64,000 nucleotides of DNA from Piromyces finnis finn (lineage: Eukaryota; Fungi; Neocallimastigomycota). The notes beneath the pieces are model-generated. The model had not been told where the DNA came from. It ran no database searches and saw only the letters and a list, made by a program, of their open reading frames with translations. This document shows positions 180-64,000 of the stretch, piece after piece (the stretch's first letter is position 1; the number at the start of each line of letters is the position of its first letter). The position numbers were made by a program, and so were the translations under genes. Location of the stretch: contig MCFH01000023.1 of NCBI GenBank assembly GCA_002104945.1, positions 620,001 to 684,000 on the forward strand. Direction: 5' to 3'.

Positions 180-1442
180 TTATATTACAGATTTTAATTC
201 TTGAACAAAATTATCCAGCACTTCACCAACAATTTTTTGATCGGATGGAGTACCATATAAATTAACACAAAATGATAAAATTTTATCAAAAGAACAAATA
301 GACATTTCGAAATTTGGGGCATACTTTGTTGAACCAGTTAATAAAACAGAAGATGCTTCAATATTCTTAAAATGTATTTTTGATTTATCAATAGTACCCA
401 AATTGGTAATTTCTAATGGATATGGTGAATAAACACTATCTATAATACTTTTACATAATCGATATGGGAATAATTTTTTAATAATCTCAGTGATATATAG
501 ACCCTTGATACAAAATATATTCTCTTTTTCTCTATTTAAACATTGTGCTACTTTATTCAATGTTTCCTCAAAAGTATCTCCAAGTTCTGAGCCAATATCA
601 CAATCAATAGTAGTTAGCATATTAGTAAAACCTTTTGTTTGTTTGTTTTGTAAATATTTTCGCATATTAATATCACATAAAATAATAACAGTTCTATTAA
701 ACTTTTTATAGAATGTTCTCATTAAAGCAGTAAAGAATAAATCATTAAGAGTAACTTGTTTTTCCTTTGAATACACCTTAAGTTTATCAAAATCTTCTTG
801 GGTTAAAGTTCTTTTTTCCAAAAATAGGCGACTTGGATCACCTTCCAATTCTAAATGAATATTTTCATACTTTGGTTTATCTTTTGAAAATAATATATTA
901 AAATTTTTTTTTAAAGAAAGGGAACGGTAAAACTGTGCCATACCTCTATCCCCCATTGATGAATAGTCAGTTACGTTTTCTGGATATGAATATAAATCAC
1001 AAAACATGTATAATAAATTTTTAAAATCGGTAGCATCACAAATCATATGATTAATAGATATAAGAAGTGAATCATGATCTTCATACTGAACAATAACAAA
1101 TCGAATTTGAGGTCCATTGTCATAATCTATATTTTTTTTAAAGTTTTCCATTATAATTTCATCTTCTTTTCCTTTTTTACCTTCAATAACAAAAATAAAA
1201 TCTTCTATTGGAAATTCATAAAATATCCATTTTGAAGTAAATATATTTTCAGAAGCTTTGCATGAAATTAATGGGAACAAGTTAATGGTTAATTGTACTG
1301 TTTTTTTAAATTGTTCTATATCAATTTTTCCTTTTAATTTTATGATAAATCTCATTATGCTATTAGAGTATTTTCTATCAATGAAAATACGTTGTAGCAT
1401 ATCAAATGACTCAAACTTGAAAATTTTGTTTTTATTTCCCAT
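180..1442 (-). CDS. Stand-alone condensation-domain / CoA-dependent acyltransferase protein (NRPS C-domain-like, Atf/PapA-type), 420 aa, intronless
   Basis: Uninterrupted ORF. Active-site-like motif SINHMICDA (HHxxxDG variant keeping the second His and the Asp), preceded by GPQIRFVIV. C-terminal ITNLG segment typical of these acyltransferases. Confidence 0.75.
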   Translation of the reverse strand: MGNKNKIFKFESFDMLQRIFIDRKYSNSIMRFIIKLKGKIDIEQFKKTVQLTINLFPLISCKASENIFTSKWIFYEFPIEDFIFVIEGKKGKEDEIIMENFKKNIDYDNGPQIRFVIVQYEDHDSLLISINHMICDATDFKNLLYMFCDLYSYPENVTDYSSMGDRGMAQFYRSLSLKKNFNILFSKDKPKYENIHLELEGDPSRLFLEKRTLTQEDFDKLKVYSKEKQVTLNDLFFTALMRTFYKKFNRTVIILCDINMRKYLQNKQTKGFTNMLTTIDCDIGSELGDTFEETLNKVAQCLNREKENIFCIKGLYITEIIKKLFPYRLCKSIIDSVYSPYPLEITNLGTIDKSKIHFKNIEASSVLLTGSTKYAPNFEMSICSFDKILSFCVNLYGTPSDQKIVGEVLDNFVQELKSVI

Positions 1443-8505: not shown

Positions 8506-11013
8506 TTATACTATTAAATTATATATAATAATGAAAAATAAGGTAAAGAACCAAAGATAATAACTATTTGCATTAAATGATAGTGAAGATGAAGAGGCAA
8601 TAGATTGTAATATTTTATAATTAGTCATTTCGACATTAAGTGAAAGAGATGCATGAATATCGTTTTTATCAACATGTTTATCAAAAAAAGGTCCTAATAC
8701 TAAATCCATTTTAATAGTTGAATTTTGTCTATCAGTAAAAATATCTTTTCCACCTTCTAACGATCCTTTATCCCCATATACTAGAGTCACTTGACCTTTA
8801 TCAAAATTTATCGTATTTGAACTAACATCAGACCAATACATTTTTGATGAATCAACATCAATTAAAACTTGTAATTTTGCATCTTTCTGAGATTTAATGT
8901 TCCATTTTTTTACCATAAAATTTAATCTATATTTTGTAGGATCTACATCTAAATTGAATTCATCTTTTTGTCTCATGCCACATTTTGAACTGCAAGTATA
9001 TAACTTTTGAAAAACTTCAACTTCTTTATCTATATTACCATTTGAATCCATTTGCCTAAACAATCTCTTTATTTCTACAATACCTCCACTAACATTTTGA
9101 CTATTATCTACAACTATCGGTTTTTCAGCTTCGTTTTCATTATTTAGATCTAAATAATTTAATACTTCGAAATTAGTTTCATTAAAACCTATTTCTATGA
9201 TCCGTTTTATCTTAAAAAATAGTTTTAATGAAAAATCATTTTTTCCAATAATATCTTTTACCAAATAGTTAGGCTTATTGCTATTAATATTATTTGGCTC
9301 TCCTTCATATGGTCCTATTTCAAATTCATTATTATTATATACATTATCTTTTTTACTATATGGATTATTTCTAAAATCATTATTATAATTATTGAAATTA
9401 AAATTATTGTTGTTGAACGTATTGAAATAATTTCTTTCATTATTTATCATTCTATTGGCATAATTGTTTTCTATATTATTATTTTCTATTAAATATTTAT
9501 TTAATTGGCTTCTTTTATAATCATAATAATAATCTCTTTTTTTATTATGGTTCTCTAATTTTTTTATTTCCACACCCATGGCTAAATCATTGTCCTTTTT
9601 AATTTTCCACAAAACTTCTGTATTTTCGGGATCTTTAAAAAATACTCTTGAAATAATTTCTTTTTCCGGAATATCCTTTACTTCATTTGCATCAATTATA
9701 TATGTAGGAAAAGGTCTATTAACAGTTGTTGTTGCAAATATAATAGTTGAAGTGGTCTTTCCTTGTCTATCATCAATAGACTTTATATTACCAATAACAT
9801 ATGGAATTTTTTTCATTTGCTGTGGTCCTTCTTTTCCTTTATCTAATAGTATTTTTCCTATAATTACAGCTAGAAAAGTCGATACCATTACTCCTATACA
9901 AAGACACGAGCATCTAATAACATATATATAAATATTTTTTTCAAAAATAAATATTCGAATAAACTTATAGTAATTAAAATAAATATAAAAATCATATATA
10001 TTATATACATACATCAATACAGATTTTTGCAAAGTTATTGATTTTTTATCCCTTTTTATTAATTTATTTTGATTTGGAAATTGACTGAAAGAATTGTTAT
10101 TTATATTTGAATTGTATGTGTTATTATTTGGCAATATATTCTGCCTTTTATTTGAAATTGCATCATAGGAAGGAGGTATGTCCTCTTCAGTTGTTGTTGA
10201 TAATACTTTTGATACTGATGGAATATATTCATTCGCTGGAGCATTTGGAAACTGATTTATATCATGTACTATATATTTATTTTTTAACTCTACACTACGA
10301 TTTAAATTATTACAATTATTAACATCTGTATTATTTATATTATCATCATTAGTATCATTTGGTGGTGAAGGAAATCTATCTATATTAAATATTAATGATT
10401 TAGTTCGAGGTATAATATCTGATGAAATATCTACATTACTAATATTTGAATGTGAATTTCCTTTACTGATCTTTTTTATTTTTTCACTTGTACTTTCTTC
10501 ATTTTCAAAAGAAGGGGGTGAAGGAAACAATGATGGATCAATAATAATTTCATTTTTATTTAATAACGTATTAGGATTATTAGTAACTATAGCAGATTCT
10601 CTTACAACTGCACTTACTGGTTTATGAGGTGCCATTACTTCAGTTTCTTTTTCTTTATTATCAAGTATTGCAACGGGTATATTATTATTTATAATCACTA
10701 TAACATCTAATGGAAATTCCTTCAAATTTTCATCTTTCGATGAAAAATATTCATCTAATATCTGAAAAGGTTTATCTAAATCTACTGAATCAAATAAATC
10801 TTTAGGATTAGATGACTTTTTAAGTCTTTCATCATCTAAAGTGATAAATTCTTTCAATTTTATTATTTTCATTTTTCTATATACATGACTTTCAAAATCT
10901 AAATGTTCTATAATTTTTTGTTTTAAATTATAAATTGTATCTTTCGGTGAAACATTCACCATAAAACCCTGACTAGGGTCATCACCCCATAATAAACAAG
11001 TTATATTTAACAT
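8506..11013 (-). CDS. Membrane protein with Crinkler-type N-terminal ubiquitin-like domain; one probable 99-bp in-frame intron (9914-10012); internal TM helix; hydrophobic C-terminal tail
   Basis: N-terminus MLNITCLLWGDDPSQGFMVNVSPKDTIYNLKQKI resembles CRN N-domains. Removing GTATGT...TTAG (10012-9914) gives KSVLICSCLCIGVMVSTFLAVIIGKILL (TM). C-terminus SSSSLSFNANSYYLWFFTLFFIIIYNLIV is GPI-signal-like. Confidence 0.7.
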   Translation of the reverse strand: MLNITCLLWGDDPSQGFMVNVSPKDTIYNLKQKIIEHLDFESHVYRKMKIIKLKEFITLDDERLKKSSNPKDLFDSVDLDKPFQILDEYFSSKDENLKEFPLDVIVIINNNIPVAILDNKEKETEVMAPHKPVSAVVRESAIVTNNPNTLLNKNEIIIDPSLFPSPPSFENEESTSEKIKKISKGNSHSNISNVDISSDIIPRTKSLIFNIDRFPSPPNDTNDDNINNTDVNNCNNLNRSVELKNKYIVHDINQFPNAPANEYIPSVSKVLSTTTEEDIPPSYDAISNKRQNILPNNNTYNSNINNNSFSQFPNQNKLIKRDKKSITLQKSVLMYVYNIYDFYIYFNYYKFIRIFIFEKNIYIYVIRCSCLCIGVMVSTFLAVIIGKILLDKGKEGPQQMKKIPYVIGNIKSIDDRQGKTTSTIIFATTTVNRPFPTYIIDANEVKDIPEKEIISRVFFKDPENTEVLWKIKKDNDLAMGVEIKKLENHNKKRDYYYDYKRSQLNKYLIENNNIENNYANRMINNERNYFNTFNNNNFNFNNYNNDFRNNPYSKKDNVYNNNEFEIGPYEGEPNNINSNKPNYLVKDIIGKNDFSLKLFFKIKRIIEIGFNETNFEVLNYLDLNNENEAEKPIVVDNSQNVSGGIVEIKRLFRQMDSNGNIDKEVEVFQKLYTCSSKCGMRQKDEFNLDVDPTKYRLNFMVKKWNIKSQKDAKLQVLIDVDSSKMYWSDVSSNTINFDKGQVTLVYGDKGSLEGGKDIFTDRQNSTIKMDLVLGPFFDKHVDKNDIHASLSLNVEMTNYKILQSIASSSSLSFNANSYYLWFFTLFFIIIYNLIV

Positions 11014-29493: not shown

Positions 29494-31044
29494 ATGGCCG
29501 ACGTTGCTACTCAACCAGCTCTTACTGAAGAATCTGTTCCAACTTCTTCTCGTAACAAGGTTAAACAAAGAGTTGCTGATACTGTTAAGAACAAGTTAAC
29601 TCAATTAAACATTGATGATGCTGAAACTCTTTCTAACCGCATTACTGAAATGCTTGCTGAAGGTAATTCTAAGGATAAGCTTAATGAAGAATTAACTAAG
29701 CTTATTGGTGCTGATAAGTTAAAGAGTTCTTTTGTTGAATGGTTATATGGTTACTCCAATGTTTTCTTCCCACCAACTCCAGCTCTTTCTGATAAGGAAG
29801 ATGAATCCGAAGAAAAGACTGAAGGTGTTAAAGGTAACAAAAAATCCAAAAAGAGTAATGATAAAGGTAATTAGCTTTTTTAATTCAAATAAAAAAGACT
29901 TATTCACCTTCTTATTTTACACTCTTTGTCAAAATATATATATATATATAATTTTCGATAGTAAAATATTGGTAATTAAAAATAAAATATTTTTTTTAAA
30001 TACAAAATAGATACTAAGACTAAGAGAAGAGCTTCTCAATCTCGTCGTGCTCGTAGTGGAAGCAAATCTTCTGTTTCTTCTATTGATACTGATAAGAGTG
30101 GCAAGAATAAGAAGCCACTTTCTCCACCAGCTTCTCCATCTCCAGCTCAAGATAAGCAAGCTAAGGAAAAGAACAAGAGAAGATTAAGCCGTTCTGCTTC
30201 TTCTCTTGACCTTGCTAACAAGGTTCAAACTGAAGTTATGGCTCAAGCTATTGCTATTGCTGCTGCTGCTGAATCTAACAATGTTAAACATACTAGAGAA
30301 CGTAGTAGTTCTATTTCTAGTAACCGTAGTGTTGAACGTCGTAATTCATTCAACCGTGAACGCAAGAACTCTATTTCTTCTAATGCTTCTAATAGTGAAC
30401 GTGTCCGCTGTCAATACTGGCCAGAATGTAATCGTGGTGATCAATGTAAATTCTGGCATCCAAAGGAATTATGTAAGAAGTATCCAAACTGCCCAGCTGG
30501 TGATAAGTGTTTATACATTCACCCAGCTTCTCCATCTAACCCACCAAGTCGCCCACAATCTAGCCCATACACAGCTCCATCTAAGCACAACCGTACTAAG
30601 AGTGATGCTTCTTCTGTAATTTCTACTGCTTCTGACAGAAGTGTTATTGAATGTAAATTTGGTGCTAACTGTAACCGTCCAGATTGTAAATACTCCCACC
30701 CAAGTCCAGCTGCTATTGCTGCTCAAATCGCTAAGAAAGCTACTGCTGCTGCCACTGAAACTTTAGAACAAACTAAACAAGAACTTCAAAAGCAATTACA
30801 AGAACAAGCACAATTAAAGGCTAACAATGCTGCTAAAACTCCAGTTAAAACTAATGTTCCATGCCATTTCTTCCCTAACTGTAAGAACCCAGATTGTCCA
30901 TACCAACACCCATCTCCAAGTCAAGCTATTAACACTCTCAAAACTAAACAAAGTAACTCTGAATTTAATGTCCCATGCCGTTACGATGGTAACTGTACTC
31001 GTGCTGATTGTAAATTCATCCACACCAACCGCAAGAATCATTAA
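29494..31044 (+). CDS. NAB2: Nab2/ZC3H14-like poly(A) RNA-binding protein: N-terminal PWI-like domain plus five CCCH fingers; 2 exons (29494-29866, 30011-31044), 468 aa
   Basis: Fingers CQYWPECNRGDQCKFWH, CKKYPNCPAGDKCLYIH, CKFGANCNRPDCKYSH, CHFFPNCKNPDCPYQH, CRYDGNCTRADCKFIH. PWI-like helical N-terminus (...SSFVEWLY). Phase-1 intron keeps frame. Confidence 0.8.
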
Positions 31045-54613: not shown

Positions 54614-57600
54614 TTATTCAAATGATGATTTTGTTCTTTTGTGAGAATAAAGCCATCCAAGCCATAATACTTGTTCATGTTGTCTCCAATATTTAGCAAT
54701 AGAGAAAGTTTGAATTGTACGTTCTCTTAATTGTAAACCTAACTTTCTACGTTTTTCACGAATGTCTTCTTGACACATACGCTTTTCTACAGCTTCAGGT
54801 CCTTTACTTAACAAATCATCTAAACGGACAACAGGTGCATTTGGATCAATTAGTTGCTCTAAACCATCTGACATTGTTAATACTCTTAATTCACCAAGAG
54901 CTAATTGTCTTGCCTTTGCTGGTGGTGCAATAGCACCATATACAACACCAGTAGATAGATCAGAAATAACTTCTCTTGAACCACCAACATCTGTACATAC
55001 AACAGGTAAACCACATAAACCAGCTTCACCTAAAGCTAATGGTAAACCTTCAGTAATTGAAGAATTAACAAACATCCAACCTGCAGGGAGAACATCTGAT
55101 GGACTACCCAAACCTTTTAATATAACTTTTCCTTGTAAATTTAAGGATGAAATAAGATTTTCACTTTCAGCAGCATAAGCAGCATCCTTTTCCTTACTAC
55201 CATAAATATAAAGTTGATAGTTACTTATATGTAGTTGATTAACAATAACATTGGCTGCATAAATAGCATTATGAATATCCTTTACGGGTGAAATATGTGA
55301 AAGCATTACAGCTAATGGAGAACTGTTTTCTAATTCTGGTTTAGGTTTAAATCTTGCAACATTCATACCATTGACAACTGGATATATACGTCTTGAAATA
55401 TCAATCTTTTGTTTATCATCGTTATATTTACCACCACCCAACCATTTTTCCCAATCAACGTTTTGAATACTTGTACATGGATTAACATAATCAGCTTTAA
55501 CAAATACTAATCTACAAACTAATCTAGTAATACCAACTAAACCCATTTGAACAAATCTTGGCATGGCTTCAGAGGAACATAAACCAAATAATCTTTCTCT
55601 CCATAAGATACCATGATCCCATACAATGAGTGTTGATTTATGAATAGCTTTTGAAATAATACCTAAAATAGCTTGAATACCATGGTGAGAAACATGAACA
55701 ACTGGAATTTTTGGTAATGTGGCGGATAATGGTAATAATAAACGAATAAGAAGAGAGAAGAGCATATCAATTTCCTTCAATGTTGGCATTTCTAATAAAA
55801 TTGTATCTTTCTTTTTGTATCTCTTCTTGGAACATTCGATCCATGTAGAAATCCATGTTTGTTGTGTAGCAGCATGGTTCCAACTCTTGACCCAATCACA
55901 TTTTTGGAAGTAAAGATACATATCAACGAATAGTTCTTCATATTCGGTTAATTTATTACTATCTAATTCATCATCAGCAATAGCGTTAATCAATTGGTAT
56001 ACCATTGGAACAAATACAGAATTAATAAGACTATCTTTAGTAGCAAGCTTCTTTCTTCTTAAAGTTCTGAAATCGAGGTTTCTGTAAATATTTTCATCTG
56101 GAGAAGAGAAATCAACATCCCATAATGGCAAGTATGTAATTGAGCTAATGTTTCTTTCAATTTGATAATCACGTTGTACAGCTTCTGCGGAACCAATTTC
56201 AACAAAGGCGGTCCAACGAATTCTAGAAAGATAATCAATCAAATCTCTTCTGCAACTACCTACACCACCACCACCAGTTGGCCATGTACCACTATCTAAG
56301 TTCATGACAGAAAGAATTTCATTATCTTGACGAACAGATTGTCTACCAACTCTTACACCATCACCACCAGTACCAAGGGCATCTAAATCAGAGAATTTGA
56401 TATGTAAATTAGTACGAGTAGTTGGATTATCAGAAACAACTAAAATAACATCAAGAATTTCCTTGAATTCCATTAATGATGCTTGTGCTTCTTCTTTCTT
56501 TCCTCTATCACGAGCCTTCCAATAATTCTTCAATACTGGTTCATCTCTTAACAAATATTCATCAACATCCCTGGCAAATACACCTTCAATCTTATTTGCT
56601 CTCCAATATGTCCATAATTCTTGTCTACCTCTAGTAGTACCAAATGGTGCTGCATAAATATATTTATGACGTCCTTGTCTAGAAAGGAATCCAGTGGTTC
56701 TTGATTTCAAGTCATGAGTTAATAATTCATTATAAACATAGAATGATGATGGTGGTAATCTTGGAAGTAATTTCAATGGATCTTGAGCAACCTCAGTTGG
56801 TGTTGATATTGGAATAGACATACCAGTTTCTTGATTAAGTAATATAGTATTAAGTCTAGTATGTTGTGGGTGAGAATAATCAAATTCTGTAATGTAAACT
56901 TGTTTTTGTTGATCTAATCTTCTGAATTCAACACGTGAGAATTTTGGTGAAGAACCACTTGTTGTATTATCAATTCTCCAACCAGCAGCAAAATATGTAA
57001 CCATTAACCATCTATCTTGTGGACATTGGTATGAAGCATATTTTGGAACAGGGTGAGTTGATGCTGTATCAGATAATTCATAAACATAACTAACATGAAT
57101 ATCAACAATTTTTCCTTCATCATTCTTAATCTTTAAATAAAGCATAGAAGTTAAACTTGCAATATTTGATGCGAATAAACGAGTTTCAATTAACTTTTCA
57201 TTATTCTTCAAATCATTTGAATATGGATCAACCATACCATCAAGTACAAAACCTTGTCTTGGGAAGAATAAAGTACTATCTGGGTATGAATAAACTCTTG
57301 TTTGTGTGACTTCTCCTTTGTTATCTAGGTCAAATTCATGTGTTAATTGATTACTACGAGCGTCGAAATAACCTCTACTAAGTGGTTTATCTTTATCCGT
57401 TGGTCTCCAATTTGGCGGTTTTGGTCCTTTGTATCTTTCAGCAATAATAACATTACCTTCGTGTCTTAAAATACTAACCATAGTATTTAAAGCGGAATTG
57501 AAAGAATCAACACGTTCAAGTTTTCCATCACGACCAAAGAATTGTTCTCTGAATAAACCACGACTCATAGAATTGATTAAAGTAGTAGTTTCATTTTTAT

Positions 57601-60600
57601 GATTTAAGTAGAAATCTTTTGTTAATAACCAAACTAATCTTCTTGTAACACTATAAATATTGGAAAAAAATATCTTTAAAATTCCTGGGATATTAGCAGC
57701 ACTTAATTCACGACCAAAACGAGAATCACCAGTTAAAGCCATGAAAAATACTAAACAAAATTCTTCAAATCTTAATCTAAGCATTTCACTAAATGGTTGT
57801 TTTTCGACTTCATTATCATTTTGAGAATGTCTCATAGTATATCCACGCTTAATAGTTGGATTACGTCTAAATGGATCTAAAGTGTTCATTTGAACAGCAA
57901 ACGAGAATCTACGTAATTTCTTTAATGAATCGCTAGTGGCTGTAGCTTTTGGATTTTTATATTGCTTAACAATGAATGATGCAATTGTACGAGATATAAA
58001 AAGTGAGAATACATTAATAGCTACTATTTGTCTTATGGTTGTGGATGAATTCTTATGAACATCTCGGAAAATTGCCATAAGATCTCTTGGAATGGAGTCA
58101 AGGAAATTACTAAATCTACTATCATTATATTTACAATTCTTTTTCTATATTGAAGTAAAATCCATAAAATATAATTAAGTACATTTAATATTTAATTTAT
58201 ATGCTTATTTATACTAAGGATAAAAAAATAAAAAATAAAAAACTTACAATTTTAAAAGCAGCTAATGCATCTTCCCAATTACTAGCCCATCTAACAAGCC
58301 AATTTCTAGATTGTTGAGATAATATTGGCCAGTATTTATCAACATTAAGACCTAAAGCTCCTTTAATTGAATTTACATTAACGGTTCCCATTAATAATTG
58401 ACTTAATTGTAACTTATTGGAATTCTTAATTTGATATAACATACGACTTGGCAAAGTATCTAACACATTTGGTAGTGGGGAGAGTAAAAATTCAGCAACA
58501 CAAGATTCAGCATGAGTATATCCACATGCTGTTTCACAAAATTCATGAATAATTGCGTTTCCAACCCACATTAAATTTTCTTGACTTAATTCATCTGAAA
58601 CAATACCCATAGATTGTGTAATAAAAGTAAATATATGCAAGACACCACTTTCATCAAGTAAAGATGTAGCTGTGTATGTATGACCTGCAATAACTAAATC
58701 AGATTCTGGGACAATATGAACTTTTATATGATTGTCTTCTAAATTTCTTATGATATCATTAATAATAGTTGTGGCATATGGAATGCATGATCTTATAATA
58801 TGATGTTTAGGTAATTCTACTAGATTTTTATTACATTGTCTAAATATACCTATTAATTTTTGCTTTGATGAATTGTTCATTTGCTCATAACCTTTAGTTA
58901 TAGCCATTTGAACAAATGTATTTAAAGTTTTTTCAGCAAGTGAATCTTTTTGTTCATTGATATATCTTTGACCGGATGAAGCTAAATGTGGTGAAAGAGT
59001 TACATTATAGTGAACACTGCTGAAAGTTTCATGTACATAAATAAATACACAAGCAAATGCAAATAACCATCCACACATTGATGTTGATATAACAATATAC
59101 CATTGAGCACCAAATATTTGTGACATAACAATTGAATAAACAATACAAATAGCAACAATACCTATTAAACAATAATTTAATTTAACTTCACTATCATTAG
59201 TTTGGAAGAACAATTTATGGAATAAACCGATTAAGAATCCAACATATCCTAATACTGAAATACCATATATAGATATTCCAATATTAGTAATTTCTTGGGT
59301 TATGAAGAATACACCAGTAATAAATATAAATACACCTAACATAATAAGAATAAATCTAAATAATTCTTTTTTATACGCCTTTTGTTTTGCATTATTGAAT
59401 TTAATGAACATTTCTTCTGCGTTACATTCACCTAATCTTAACTGGGAAGATGAGTCTTTATGAACATCCAATAAATGAGAAAGTGAAATTTCTAAGAAAC
59501 CAGAACAAAGAAGCATAAATACTGTACCAAATAATGTACCAATAACATATTCAGTTAAACCGTCACCGACAATGAAAAGAGCTGGTTCACCATATGAGAA
59601 AAGCCATACCCATTTATCCATGAAAATGAAAATGAAATATAATACACCAAATACAATGACTGTATTTTCAAATTCAAATAATAAGTCACCTCTGTTTAAT
59701 TTTTCTACTTGATACTTCTTTTTTAATTCATTAATTGCAGCCTTTAACATTGTATCCCATTCGGTACTATATTTTGCGGGAGGTGGATTTGTACCAGTTC
59801 TTTGTAAAAACCATTGCATTAATTCAGATTCCCATCTTTGTTGTTTTTCTCTTTTATAAATAATAGTTGCGAGATTTTTGCTTTTTGAACCTAATGCTTT
59901 AGTAACTGTATCCATATAATGCTCTCTTGCAGCTCTTTCCCATAATCTAATTCTTTTTTCATATAATTCTTGTTCTTCATTAAGGAATGGTAATGGCTTT
60001 GGATAAGACTTTTCAAATAAGTTTTGAATATCACTTTCTGTTGGTACATTAAGTGAAAATGGCCAATCCATATAATCCTTTGCAATGCATCTGTATTCAT
60101 ATGCCATATAAATCCATGAAATGGTTAAACCAACAGAATAAATAGCCCATACTACAACTGAATAAGAATCATCAGCAAATACAAATCTCGAAATGCACAT
60201 CGGAACAATCATAATACATACACCCTTTAAAGCGGCAGATGGTCCATCTGAAGTAAATATAAGTTGAGTTGAATCTTTGAGACTAGCCAAAATCGAAAAG
60301 AATGTCATATATAAACAGAATGATATACCGTAAAGAAATGAAAATACAAAGATATACCACTTAAAACCATAAGATAAAAATAGCGTTAAAGCCAAAACAA
60401 ACGCAGAAACAAGATAAACTACAATTGCAAGTGAAAGTCTTCTAATAAAAGCACTAAGCATCAAGGGAATTGATTTCTGGAAGAAATAATATGTACATGT
60501 TCTTGCAATTGAATTAATAATACCACCAATAATTGGGAAAAGAATTAAGAAAACATAATTTAAACATTTTCTTGCTTCAGAATCCATTCTATCAGTAAAG

Positions 60601-63504
60601 AAAATACCAGAACCTAAGAATTTTGAAAAACCAAGATCAAGAACAACAGGATATACGAACAAAAATGCATTTGCTAAAACTCTTGCCGAATGTTCATTTA
60701 GTTCTTCGTTGTTAATTTCATCTGTAACTTTCTTGAAAATAGGTATTTTTTTGGCTCTTTTTCTTAATAATTCATGCATTGGATGCGATAATTGATGACT
60801 TGTTAAATCAAACAAGAAATTAAGATTAGCTTGTGTTGTTGTCATTTCCAAACTGACTGCAACCTGTATAATTATTTTTTTTTTACATTTTAATTAAAAA
60901 GTTAATATATATATAATATATATTACATTACATGCTTTAAATTTGTTTTTACTTACTTGATCTGATTCTGGTAAGAAACATGGATTCATAGCTACTAATG
61001 ATGAAAACAGTTCTAACCATGCAATACGTCGACATGCTTTCCAGAAGCACGAAAACAGGTAAACAATACATGCTGTATATGGTGAATTAATTTTTATTTG
61101 AGTACCTGTAATTGCTTCGGTTAAACATGTTGAAAATACTTTAAGTGTATTTAAACCTTCCGGATCAAGAGTAGCCCAACCTACAATTCTGCAAAATTCT
61201 TCTTCTAAATTATTTGTTTTTGTTGGTTGGTAACCTGTTTTAGCACATTGTAATAAATAATCTAAATAACGTTGCTTTTCTATTAATAAATATTCTGAAT
61301 ATATTTTAATATAATCTGCCATTGATGCTAAATAATTTATTTGCTCTGATGATAAACTTTTACACCTTTGAATATCTCTAACAACCCCTCTTGTATTTTG
61401 AATATAAGTTAACTTTTCGGAGTAGCTACTATTATTGAGTTGCCATATCATGCGCTCTGGAATTGGTAATAGATTATCAACATCTTGTGCATTTACTAAA
61501 CTTTCAAAAATCGTACATACTTTTGTATCATATCCTGCAACATGTTTTGCATATATATGTATAATTGCTTCAAGAATATTTGGGATTGTTTCTGATATAA
61601 ATATTAATAATACACCTGATTCATTTCTGTCTTCTGCTGCTAAACCCCAAACAAGATTATATGGAATATTGAAATTCTCTTTTAAATTAAACGAGTTACT
61701 GGTAGCAGTATATACTCTAATATTATTCTTTGCAAGACCGTCTCTTAAATTTAATAAGATTTTCAACGGGTTATAATTTCTTAAAATCTTTAATAAATAT
61801 TTAGCTGATTTACTTGGTTTCTTGATTATACTATCTAATGTTTTCATTAAAACCTCAAATTGAACCGAGAAATTATTACTTGGAACATCAATTGATGTTC
61901 TAACATGACTTAATAACTTTTTTTTTAATAATTCAAACATAACTTCTAATATACTGTTTTCAACATCAATTTTTCTTGTTATACCATAACTTGTACCAAA
62001 ATATGTTAAACTTGAACATGTTGTTTTAGATTTCAAAGGAACATTAAATTTTACTGATGAACTTTTTGAAATAACTGGTGATTGAGAACCTTTATTAATA
62101 TGATTTAGTATATTTGGAATTAAATCATGAAATTCATCTTCTTCACCTTCGTCCTTTTATTATTTAATATTAAATATTAATATATAACAATATGTAATTA
62201 AATATAATTAATATATATCATCCAATTAATTAAATTATAAATAATAAAATGTCTATTCAACATAAAAGAATGAAATAATAAAACTTATTTATATACATAT
62301 TTTTTATTTTATTATATTAATCTATACTTACTTGAATTGATTGAAGGATTTCATCAATTGATATAGGCTTTGGAGCTGGCTTTTTTTCATATATTGCGGA
62401 ATAAAAATCATTTTCTGTTGTTTTATATACAGATGGAATTCTTTCTCTTATAAATTTTGGGAATCTAATTAGATGCATTGTTTTTTTCCAAATTTCAGGT
62501 GTAATTTTAAAATTTCTCCAATCAACATGAAGTGTACATTCTTCCATAATTAAATGTATATCTTTGATAACACCATCATTAATAAATTCAAAAACACTAT
62601 CATCATCAACAGTCCTATAATCCAATGGTTTTAATTCTTTTAAATCAAGGAAATTTTTATTATTGCATGTAAATCCTTTGAAACCATATCCATTTAGCCA
62701 TTTAATATAATAACGATCTCTAATATACTCTTCATGATGCTGTTGACGAACAGGCATTATTTCAATATCAAGAACAATAAAATCTGAACGAATAGTAATT
62801 TCATTTTTTAATCTTTGAAGTAAATCTGGATAATCTGTTGTTAATGCATCTAAAGAAGTTTTCTGAGTACCATCTTCAAAAAAAACAGAATTTTTTAATA
62901 CTACACCATTAATATATGTTTTAACCTTATTAAATAAATCTAAATTATCAAGATCTACTAATTTAACCATGCTTTGGAAGAAGCTAGTCATATCTGCTAA
63001 AAGTTGAACACATCCAGGAATTCCAAGATTTTCTTCTAGATATGAAAATTCAAAAAATACAATACCTTGAATAATACCTTGTGGTAATTCATTGGTTGTT
63101 TCTTTAACTAATTTTTTTAAATATTTAAAAAAATGACCTTTTGAATGTTTTTGATAGTCATTCCATTTTTCACGAACATTAATGGAAGTCAATACCATTT
63201 TATATGAAGATACAAAATCATAATAAGAAACATTTGGATTTTTATTTTCACTCATAAACTTTAAATTTTCATTATGTGAGTTTAAAAGTTTATCAATTGG
63301 TAAAATTAATAGGTCAATATTATTATTACCATTAATATAATTTAATTTTCCTAAATCCCCATTGTATACACCAAAACTCTGAATATTTTTTGAGTTAAAA
63401 AGTGGTGTTTTATATGCTAAAATATCATTTTTTCTATTACCATTGTTACCATTATTATTATTATTATTATTGTTGTTGTTGTTATCTTTCTTTTGTTTTG
63501 CCAT
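54614..63504 (-). CDS. Giant (2838 aa) integral-membrane GT4 glycosyltransferase, PelF/Gtb3-like putative exopolysaccharide synthase; 4 exons (63504-62332, 62153-60957, 60863-58248, 58144-54614)
   Basis: Three phase-0 GT-AG introns fuse four ORFs from the track. A dozen or more hydrophobic segments in exon 3. C-terminal GT-B domain with WDHGILWRER (compare PelF EHGIYTRER), NGMNVARF, SHISPVKDI and the ExxxxxxxE motif EGLPLALGE...CTDVGGSREVI. Confidence 0.85.
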
Positions 63505-64000
63505 AATGAAATATTACTATATTGATATATAATTATTGATACATGAAAATTTGAAATATTGAGTTAATTAGATAAATATTTGTATAATTGCCATATATAT
63601 ATCATAATAGGCTCTGAATGAATAAGCACCGAGACAAAGATATAAATATTATAAATATAAGTTTATTAATTTTTATTTTTAAATGTAATTTTTTTTTATA
63701 TAATTAATTAGTATATATTTATATATATATTTATATAATTACTTAATATATTTTTAAGCTTATATATTTTGAATAGAATATATCTTTTTTAAATTTTGAA
63801 ATTTACTTTTTATATTTTAATAGATATATCTATTTATTTCATAAAAAAATAACCCTTTATACTATTGCTATACCCATACAAAAAAATTATTATTTTTCTT
63901 TTTTAAAAATATATATTTACAAATAATAAGATTTCACTTTATTTTAGTGAAGTGACTTTTTATAAATAAACTAAATTATAAATAAAAAGAAGAATGAACG

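Follow-up and report, generated by a model that had tools for sequence, protein, structure and literature searches.

A Gtb3-superfamily gene of the anaerobic gut fungus Piromyces finnis encoding a predicted giant PelG-PelF fusion protein

A single-chain PelG-PelF fusion protein

The gene described here lies on the minus strand of a 64,000-nucleotide stretch of the Piromyces finnis genome (contig MCFH01000023.1, positions 620,001 to 684,000; hereafter the window) and is predicted to be spliced between window positions 63504 and 54614 from four exons (391 + 399 + 872 + 1176 amino acids, aa) into one 2838-aa, 326-kDa protein. This protein is a single-chain fusion of a membrane block homologous to bacterial PelG with a PelF-type glycosyltransferase domain, together with extra modules seen only in eukaryotes. 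On the evidence of sequence comparison, the gene can soundly be assigned to the already known Gtb3 superfamily, in which it falls in a paralogous clade (clade A) as an ancient sister of Aspergillus fumigatus Gtb3.

The predicted catalytic domain forms the C-terminus of the protein (54617..56320, minus strand; aa 2271-2838), where exon 4 matched the Pfam families DUF3492 (PF11997, 1.3e-13) and then Glycos_transf_1 (PF00534, 2.4e-18). With the NCBIfam PelF equivalog model NF038011 the protein scored 101.4 bits, marginally above the cut-off of 100 (alignment to model positions 4-426 of 489); bacterial PelFs scored 134-193 bits with this model, and A. fumigatus Gtb3 scored 75 bits as compared to the 101 bits of the window protein. 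The nine bacterial homologues of ~500 aa found among the matches were all PelF, and 46 invariant positions were defined from nine PelFs; the window protein retains 34/46 and A. fumigatus Gtb3 29/46 of these. The residues kept include H2506-G, R2511-E2512, K2617-D2618, E2694/E2702, and G2716-G2717 (i.e., the HG..RE, KD, EX7E, and GG motifs). A preliminary description of this DNA had proposed a C-terminal glycosyltransferase family 4 (GT4) domain with PelF-like HGILWRER and ExxxxxxxE motifs, and both motifs are indeed present (HGILWRER at aa 2506 and E2694-x7-E2702) in a domain that passes the PelF model. The same description had placed the motif NLDSGTWPTGGGG... in a large cytosolic region; this motif, at aa 2277, instead belongs to the glycine-rich beginning of the PelF-type domain itself and fits the PelF consensus EGTYPYxxGGVSTW. 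These residues identify the C-terminus as a retaining GT4 domain of the PelF type whose catalytic motifs are intact; a phmmer search of exon 4 against PDB sequences returned only a generic GT4 (SdgB, 3e-4). The window domain shares with bacterial PelF the DUF3492 plus Glycos_transf_1 architecture, the glycine-rich motif, HG..RE, KD, and EX7E, at ~26-30% identity; however, bacterial PelF is a free protein of ~500 aa encoded in an operon with pelD, pelE, and pelG, while the domain described here is the C-terminus of a 2838-aa membrane protein. Because it is part of a giant protein in which PelD- and PelE-like parts were not detected, it does not represent a PelF in the operon sense.

Upstream of the transferase, hydropathy analysis placed two sets of six helices within aa 852-1398, preceded by ~850 soluble aa, in agreement with the soluble N-terminus and polytopic membrane block of the preliminary description. 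Profile and structure evidence define this block as a PelG-like module of the MOP superfamily (59019..60716, minus strand; aa ~840-1405), which consists of two six-helix bundles separated by a eukaryote-specific cytosolic insert of ~140 aa (aa ~1045-1184). A profile built from the membrane blocks of 21 eukaryote proteins was searched against 1670 open reading frames (ORFs) from 83 bacterial loci (80 pelF loci and 3 more) and matched 52 ORFs at E<1e-3 (best 1.4e-21), nearly all of them a PelG-sized ORF directly downstream of pelF (three were on the opposite strand); the matches fall in two segments, one for each six-helix bundle. When matched bacterial ORFs were tested with Pfam, five of seven were identified as PelG, two of them above the family cut-off, and hhalign of the membrane block against one bacterial PelG gave a probability of 86% (E 4.8e-6). 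A language-model feature search of the Atlas also found PelG clusters to be the nearest to the membrane block. In addition, a structure model of exon 3 generated with AlphaFold2 (AF2; pLDDT 79.3) presented PelG as its best Atlas shape match (a PelG cluster, TM 0.81), and the top 47 Foldseek matches of this model in the PDB were MATE, Wzx, and MurJ proteins (TM by target up to 0.59, E ~0.01). Single sequences of the 21 eukaryote membrane blocks gave no match to Pfam PelG (PF16933), even at E<=1; the kinship is thus visible only with profiles and structure.

The window module and bacterial PelG share the two six-helix bundles, the MOP fold, and the motifs GG(I/F)xxxIGRxxxYY and LYF..F.DR (in a helix), but the window module carries the ~140-aa insert between its halves and is fused upstream of the transferase. 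The order of the two modules in the eukaryote chain (PelG, then PelF) is also the reverse of that in bacterial pel loci, where pelG lies downstream of pelF. Single ORFs of ~1100-1150 aa that appear to be PelF-PelG fusions were found in Chloroflexota metagenome-assembled genomes (Anaerolineae / Chloroflexales; L046:6890-10345 and L054:1850-5176); this fusion looks independent, because its order (F, then G) is opposite to that of the eukaryote family. A further stretch at aa 1702-1720 was considered as a 13th membrane helix, but its hydrophobicity is shared by only some close relatives, which makes such a helix improbable. A literature search, the coverage of which was incomplete, found no statement that the membrane block of the Gtb3 family is related to PelG, and the PelG nature of this block seems unreported in the searchable literature.

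Two ancient clades and the candidate product

When 1.84 billion representatives were searched exhaustively with HMMER, 163 proteins were recovered at E<=1e-30. Approximately 44 of the best matches are giant proteins of 2400-4400 aa in which MAFFT alignment revealed four shared blocks in identical order. These include proteins from chytrids (Rhizophlyctis, Nowakowskiella, Dinochytrium, Blyttiomyces, Siphonaria, and a Chytridiales sp.), Gonapodya, Bifiguratus (Mucoromycota), many ascomycetes, and the unicellular holozoans Corallochytrium and Creolimax, as well as a second gene of the anaerobic fungus Anaeromyces robustus (P0007) that is 41% identical to the window protein over its full length. 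Two entries (P0046 and P0182) represent A. fumigatus Gtb3, as told by the neighboring genes for Agd3, GH114, and Spherulin4; exon 4 matched Gtb3 over residues 411-1164 with 35% identity (E 1.3e-114). The window protein is similar in size to Gtb3 (AFUA_3G07860; NCU05132 in Neurospora crassa), with 2838 aa here and 2893 aa in Gtb3, and both present a soluble N-terminus, a 12-helix block, a linker, and a PelF-type GT4 C-terminus in shared order, as well as a domain with an HExxE...H...E pattern behind the membrane block. Two further clade-B ascomycete proteins (P0047 and P0051) align collinearly with the window protein from ~aa 520 to the end.

Phylogenetic analyses separated the eukaryote proteins from bacterial ones and divided them into two clades, regardless of the module used. 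The tree of the GT domain (74 rows) presented support of 100 for eukaryotes versus bacteria, for clade A, and for clade B; in the tree of the PelG module, bacteria were separated at 99 and clades A and B were supported at 90 and 98; and a careful tree of both modules concatenated (1009 columns) supported eukaryotes versus bacteria at 100/100, clade A at 100/99, and clade B at 100/100. The window gene falls in clade A, with genes of chytrids, Gonapodya, anaerobic fungi, and the two unicellular holozoans, while Gtb3 falls in clade B. Within clade A the holozoans branch first, then Gonapodya, and then chytrids plus anaerobic fungi; within clade B chytrids are followed by Bifiguratus and then by the ascomycetes, including Gtb3, so that the order within each clade of the concatenated tree resembles the species tree. 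The trees of the GT domain and the PelG module are congruent; as both modules share one history, the PelG-PelF fusion arose once, before clades A and B split. The two clades are paralogous, since Dinochytrium kinnereticum has one gene in each. Among the best 150 of the 163 matches, all placeable proteins with an AT-rich amino-acid make-up like that of anaerobic fungi belong to clade A, and no clade-B gene with such a composition was found. The proposal that the window encodes a Gtb3-like synthase therefore holds as far as full-length collinear homology and the four-block layout are concerned, but the gene is not an orthologue of Gtb3, given its place in the separate clade A. The preliminary description had presented the gene cluster of Gtb3 as described mainly from filamentous ascomycetes; the synthase family is not chiefly an ascomycete one, as it occurs in chytrids, Monoblepharidomycetes, Mucoromycota, and unicellular holozoans as well. 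The gene cluster behind galactosaminogalactan (GAG) production has been reported only from Pezizomycotina and Trichosporon (PMC4817252), and the ancient two-clade spread of the synthase family seems unreported in the searchable literature; our literature search, incomplete in its coverage, found no paper stating that anaerobic fungi have the synthase.

By analogy with the characterized members of both flanks, we consider it plausible, and on balance rather probable, that the window protein is a single-chain exopolysaccharide machine making a GAG- or Pel-like polymer with an adhesive role. In the proposed mechanism, the cytosolic PelF-like domain would polymerize a sugar activated with uridine diphosphate (UDP), and the PelG-like module would, by analogy, carry the chain across the plasma membrane; control by cyclic di-GMP of the PelD/PelE type does not form part of this mechanism. 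The product would be an alpha-1,4-linked polymer of the Pel/GAG type rich in N-acetylgalactosamine (GalNAc). Genes elsewhere in the genome would provide the secreted CE18 deacetylases and GH114/GH135 hydrolases that trim this polymer and make it cationic, and an adhesive material of the surface or matrix would result. We infer the GAG-like product and a role in fiber adhesion indirectly, from phylogenetic bracketing, from published counts of carbohydrate-active enzymes (CAZymes), and from the gene neighborhoods of two clade-A synthases in other species, all of them sources outside the window. With regard to bracketing, the two characterized products, Pel and GAG, flank clade A on the tree, and both bacterial Pel (PMC12022489) and fungal GAG (PMC9860509, PMC11356417) are alpha-1,4 GalNAc-type polymers. 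With regard to CAZymes, genomes of anaerobic fungi have been reported to contain 8-21 CE18 and 9-26 CBM87 modules each (PMC12586995, Table 2), homologues of Agd3 have been described in anaerobic herbivore symbionts and Gonapodya (PMC7229062), and GH114 ranks in the top five glycoside hydrolase families of anaerobic fungi by abundance, where it has no known substrate (PMC6054980). Our own word-index search with A. fumigatus Agd3 gave matches dominated by Eurotiales.

Two clade-A synthases were found near genes of types expected for such a pathway. In Siphonaria sp. JEL0065 (JADGJB010000110.1, L095:8600-9688), a Spherulin4/GH135 gene of the Sph3 family (35.8 bits vs. 30.2) is located one gene away from the synthase. 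In Gonapodya sp. JEL0774 (JADIIX010000048.1, L093:24020-25300), a gene for a GalE-type UDP-glucose 4-epimerase is located 3.7 kb downstream of the synthase; its exon pieces match TIGR01179 collinearly, and in the public annotation it is joined with a ribosomal L1 gene. By a rough estimate from a small sample, the presence of GH135 and GalE genes near 2 of ~7 clade-A loci is unlikely to be due to chance. In the public Siphonaria model (P0022), the synthase is wrongly joined with a transportin-like gene, and a chitin synthase gene and an alginate-lyase-2-like gene lie downstream at this locus.

Several observations weigh against a GAG-like product. The Siphonaria and Gonapodya neighborhoods are single cases in which an unrelated gene separates the synthase from its neighbor, and GalE also has housekeeping functions. 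No GAG partner genes were identified in the window, where positions 1-54600 and 63505-64000 were examined by Pfam scans of the ten largest neighboring ORFs and by tblastn with A. fumigatus Agd3 and GH114 and Gonapodya GalE (no match below E 1.3); the preliminary description had likewise seen none on the visible side. Partner genes were also absent beside the A. robustus orthologue and paralogue, two Rhizophlyctis loci, and two Dinochytrium loci. At the A. fumigatus locus, by contrast, the GAG cluster (uge3/sph3/ega3/agd3) is visible beside Gtb3; no partner genes adjoin the synthase at the Dothidotthia locus. Furthermore, the CE18 and GH114 expansions are counts taken from published surveys, our literature search found no report of galactosamine (GalN) in the walls of anaerobic fungi, and the specificity of the window gene may have shifted, as it is a paralogue rather than an orthologue of Gtb3. 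We know of no residue-level marker of donor specificity for this family, and even bacterial PelG is not known to export the polymer.

These points give some room to the explanation that the same machine makes another product (e.g., a polymer based on glucose, galactose, or N-acetylglucosamine), clade A having left the clade of Gtb3 before fungi diversified; the CE18/GH114 set would then act on the product of the paralogue, on bacterial Pel in rumen biofilms, or on dietary or host glycans. UDP-glucose was reportedly proposed as the substrate of PelF in an early study. The position of the window gene outside clade B and the lack of clustering with GAG genes in the window and at most clade-A loci are consistent with this explanation, and reviews have doubted that Gtb3 alone sets the composition of GAG (PMC9860509). 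However, both characterized flanks of clade A make alpha-1,4 GalNAc-type polymers, the window protein retains more of the PelF-invariant residues than Gtb3 does, GH135 and GalE genes occur near clade-A synthases in two species, and anaerobic fungi presented no clade-B gene, among the best 150 of the 163 matches, that could otherwise supply the substrate. We therefore regard a different product as unlikely, though as a possibility to be taken seriously, and retain a GAG- or Pel-like polymer as the preferred reading.

Gene structure, accessory modules, and inheritance

The window contains four long minus-strand ORFs (62317-63504, 60894-62036, 58209-60851, and 54614-58078), which the preliminary description had joined into one 2838-aa protein. 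A splice model was derived by listing all GT/AG pairs close to the ends of these ORFs, and it reproduced the joining exactly. Exon 1 (62332..63504; aa 1-391), defined by the ORF and the splice enumeration, includes the start codon and encodes a soluble N-terminus with low-complexity poly-N; exon 2 (60957..62153; aa 392-790) continues the soluble N-terminal region; exon 3 (58248..60863; aa 791-1662) encodes the membrane block and the domain after it; and exon 4 (54614..58144; aa 1663-2838 plus the stop codon) encodes a cytosolic linker and the catalytic domain. All three introns are phase 0, with GTAAGT donors at 62331, 60956, and 58247 and last intron bases at 62154, 60864, and 58145, respectively: intron 1 (62154..62331, minus strand) has 178 nt and is found in the same place in A. 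robustus, intron 2 (60864..60956, minus strand) has 93 nt, and intron 3 (58145..58247, minus strand) has 103 nt. For intron 3, acceptors at 58145 and, 6 nt downstream, at 58139 both fit, and the resulting proteins differ by 2 aa. The region is AT-rich, with a GC content of 26-35% in coding parts and 8-15% in intergenic parts.

A full four-exon orthologue with the same four ORFs was identified on A. robustus contig MCFG01000386.1 (L001:3152-12391). A tblastn alignment of the spliced window protein to this contig breaks at aa 391, ~790, and 1662, with identities of 87, 85, 84, and 94% for the successive exons; the exon 1 alignment extends from aa 1 to 391. A rumen metagenome contig (L002) retains the exon border at aa 1662/1663, as A. 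robustus does, and exon 4 is 94% identical in both. Homologues encoded as a single chain cross junction 2 without a break (PESDQ/VAVSLEMTTTQ). In the public A. robustus record, this gene is annotated only as a 734-aa C-terminal fragment (P0003); surveys of A. robustus based on its proteome would therefore miss or undersize the synthase, and this annotation may be why the gene was overlooked. An explanation by four separate genes, or by a decaying gene with an inactive catalytic domain, could draw on this fragmentary record and on the fact that the joining of exons was read from sequence comparison, but it is highly improbable: the frame is open across all four exons with canonical phase-0 introns, the A. 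robustus and rumen contigs present identical exon borders at 84-94% aa identity, the window protein is collinear with single-chain homologues of 2400-4400 aa, and the GT4 catalytic motifs are intact. A pseudogene was thus rejected, and the window gene is, as far as can be read from these comparisons, one intact and vertically inherited gene.

Several modules of the protein lie outside the PelG- and PelF-like parts. No Pfam family was identified in exon 1 and no significant Pfam match in exon 2. A domain of ~120 aa is duplicated on either side of the PelG-like block (hhalign of family slices, 97.3%, E 1.9e-11, 117 columns). Copy 1 (61386..61763, minus strand; aa 522-647), identified with hhalign, has lost the metal-type motif, while copy 2 (58377..58769, minus strand; aa 1489-1619), identified with hhalign and the family alignment, carries the HExxE...H...E pattern noted above, in which H773, E777, H784, and E791 of exon 3 are near-invariant across 21 family members; shape matches of copy 2 in the Atlas were weak and zincin-like (SprT-like, DUF1570, and Matrixin). 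Structure prediction places a Rhs/YD-repeat-like beta-hairpin sheet of ~300 aa in the linker (56654..57556, minus strand; exon-4 residues 197-497), which also has a helical part. The AF2 model of the linker (pLDDT 80.3, pTM 0.71) matched Rhs, teneurin, and OspA in Foldseek at E ~1e-5 and RHS_repeat clusters in the Atlas with weak TM; an antiparallel sheet of this predicted type in a presumably cytosolic linker would be unusual for such an enzyme. A profile of the linker had no match among PDB sequences, and Atlas feature searches with the linker and with exon 2 gave no usable match. The N-terminal halves, the loop between the bundles, the domain behind the membrane block, and the linker were also made into profiles, none of which had a match in the 1670 bacterial pel-locus ORFs; as these non-PelG, non-PelF profiles matched nothing there, no equivalents of PelD, PelE, or PelA were detected in the protein.

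It could be imagined that an anaerobic fungus, from a lineage known for taking up bacterial genes on a massive scale, recently gained a pelF/pelG pair from bacteria by horizontal transfer: bacterial PelF and PelG are the closest non-eukaryote relatives, and anaerobic fungi possess many CAZymes of bacterial origin (PMC8778642). Such a transfer is ruled out by the single fusion history and the monophyly of eukaryotes (100/100) in the trees and has next to no probability in view of a clade-A branching order that tracks organismal phylogeny, three spliceosomal introns, an AT-rich composition like that of the host, a module order (G, then F) that is the reverse of bacterial operons and of the bacterial fusions seen, and ~1700 aa of eukaryote-only modules without a match in bacterial pel loci.

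Among the ten largest remaining ORFs of the window are a nonribosomal peptide synthetase (NRPS) condensation piece, a Crinkler-type N-domain, ankyrin, a CCCH zinc-finger protein, and RPS6e. The NRPS condensation domain (PF00668, 9.2e-9) is encoded by a 420-aa ORF at 180-1442 (minus strand), which may be a piece of a gene leaving the window. An 835-aa ORF at 8506-11013 (minus strand) matches the Crinkler effector N-terminal domain over its first 95 residues (PF20147, 4.5e-7), and a GC-rich island at 30238-31044 (plus strand; 0.40 as compared to ~0.15 around it) encodes five Nab2-type CCCH zinc fingers.

Implications for GAG-type synthases and anaerobic gut fungi

Gtb3 has been described as a ~300-kDa transmembrane transferase that has not yet been modelled (PMC9860509). 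Homology to PelG provides a mechanistic frame for this enzyme and links the fungal and bacterial systems through the export module as well as through the transferase. That two old clades extend from unicellular holozoans as far as the ascomycetes alters the view that GAG is a speciality of the latter.

Anaerobic gut fungi are major fiber degraders, and published surveys have named neither a substrate nor a synthase for their GH114 and CE18 enzymes. For this synthase the window gene and its paralogue offer concrete candidates, and the window enzyme is the best candidate source of the polymer on which these enzymes would act. As a tentative scenario, which we consider possible but still doubtful as a whole, the PelG-PelF fusion would have arisen once, before fungi and holozoans parted, and would then have duplicated into two lineages, of which gut fungi would have kept only clade A, with at least two paralogues, making an alpha-1,4 GalN/GalNAc polymer for remodelling by CE18/CBM87 and GH114. 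If true, this would explain a long-standing orphan in the CAZyme inventory of gut fungi and would indicate a Pel/GAG-like glue in fiber attachment or rumen biofilms.

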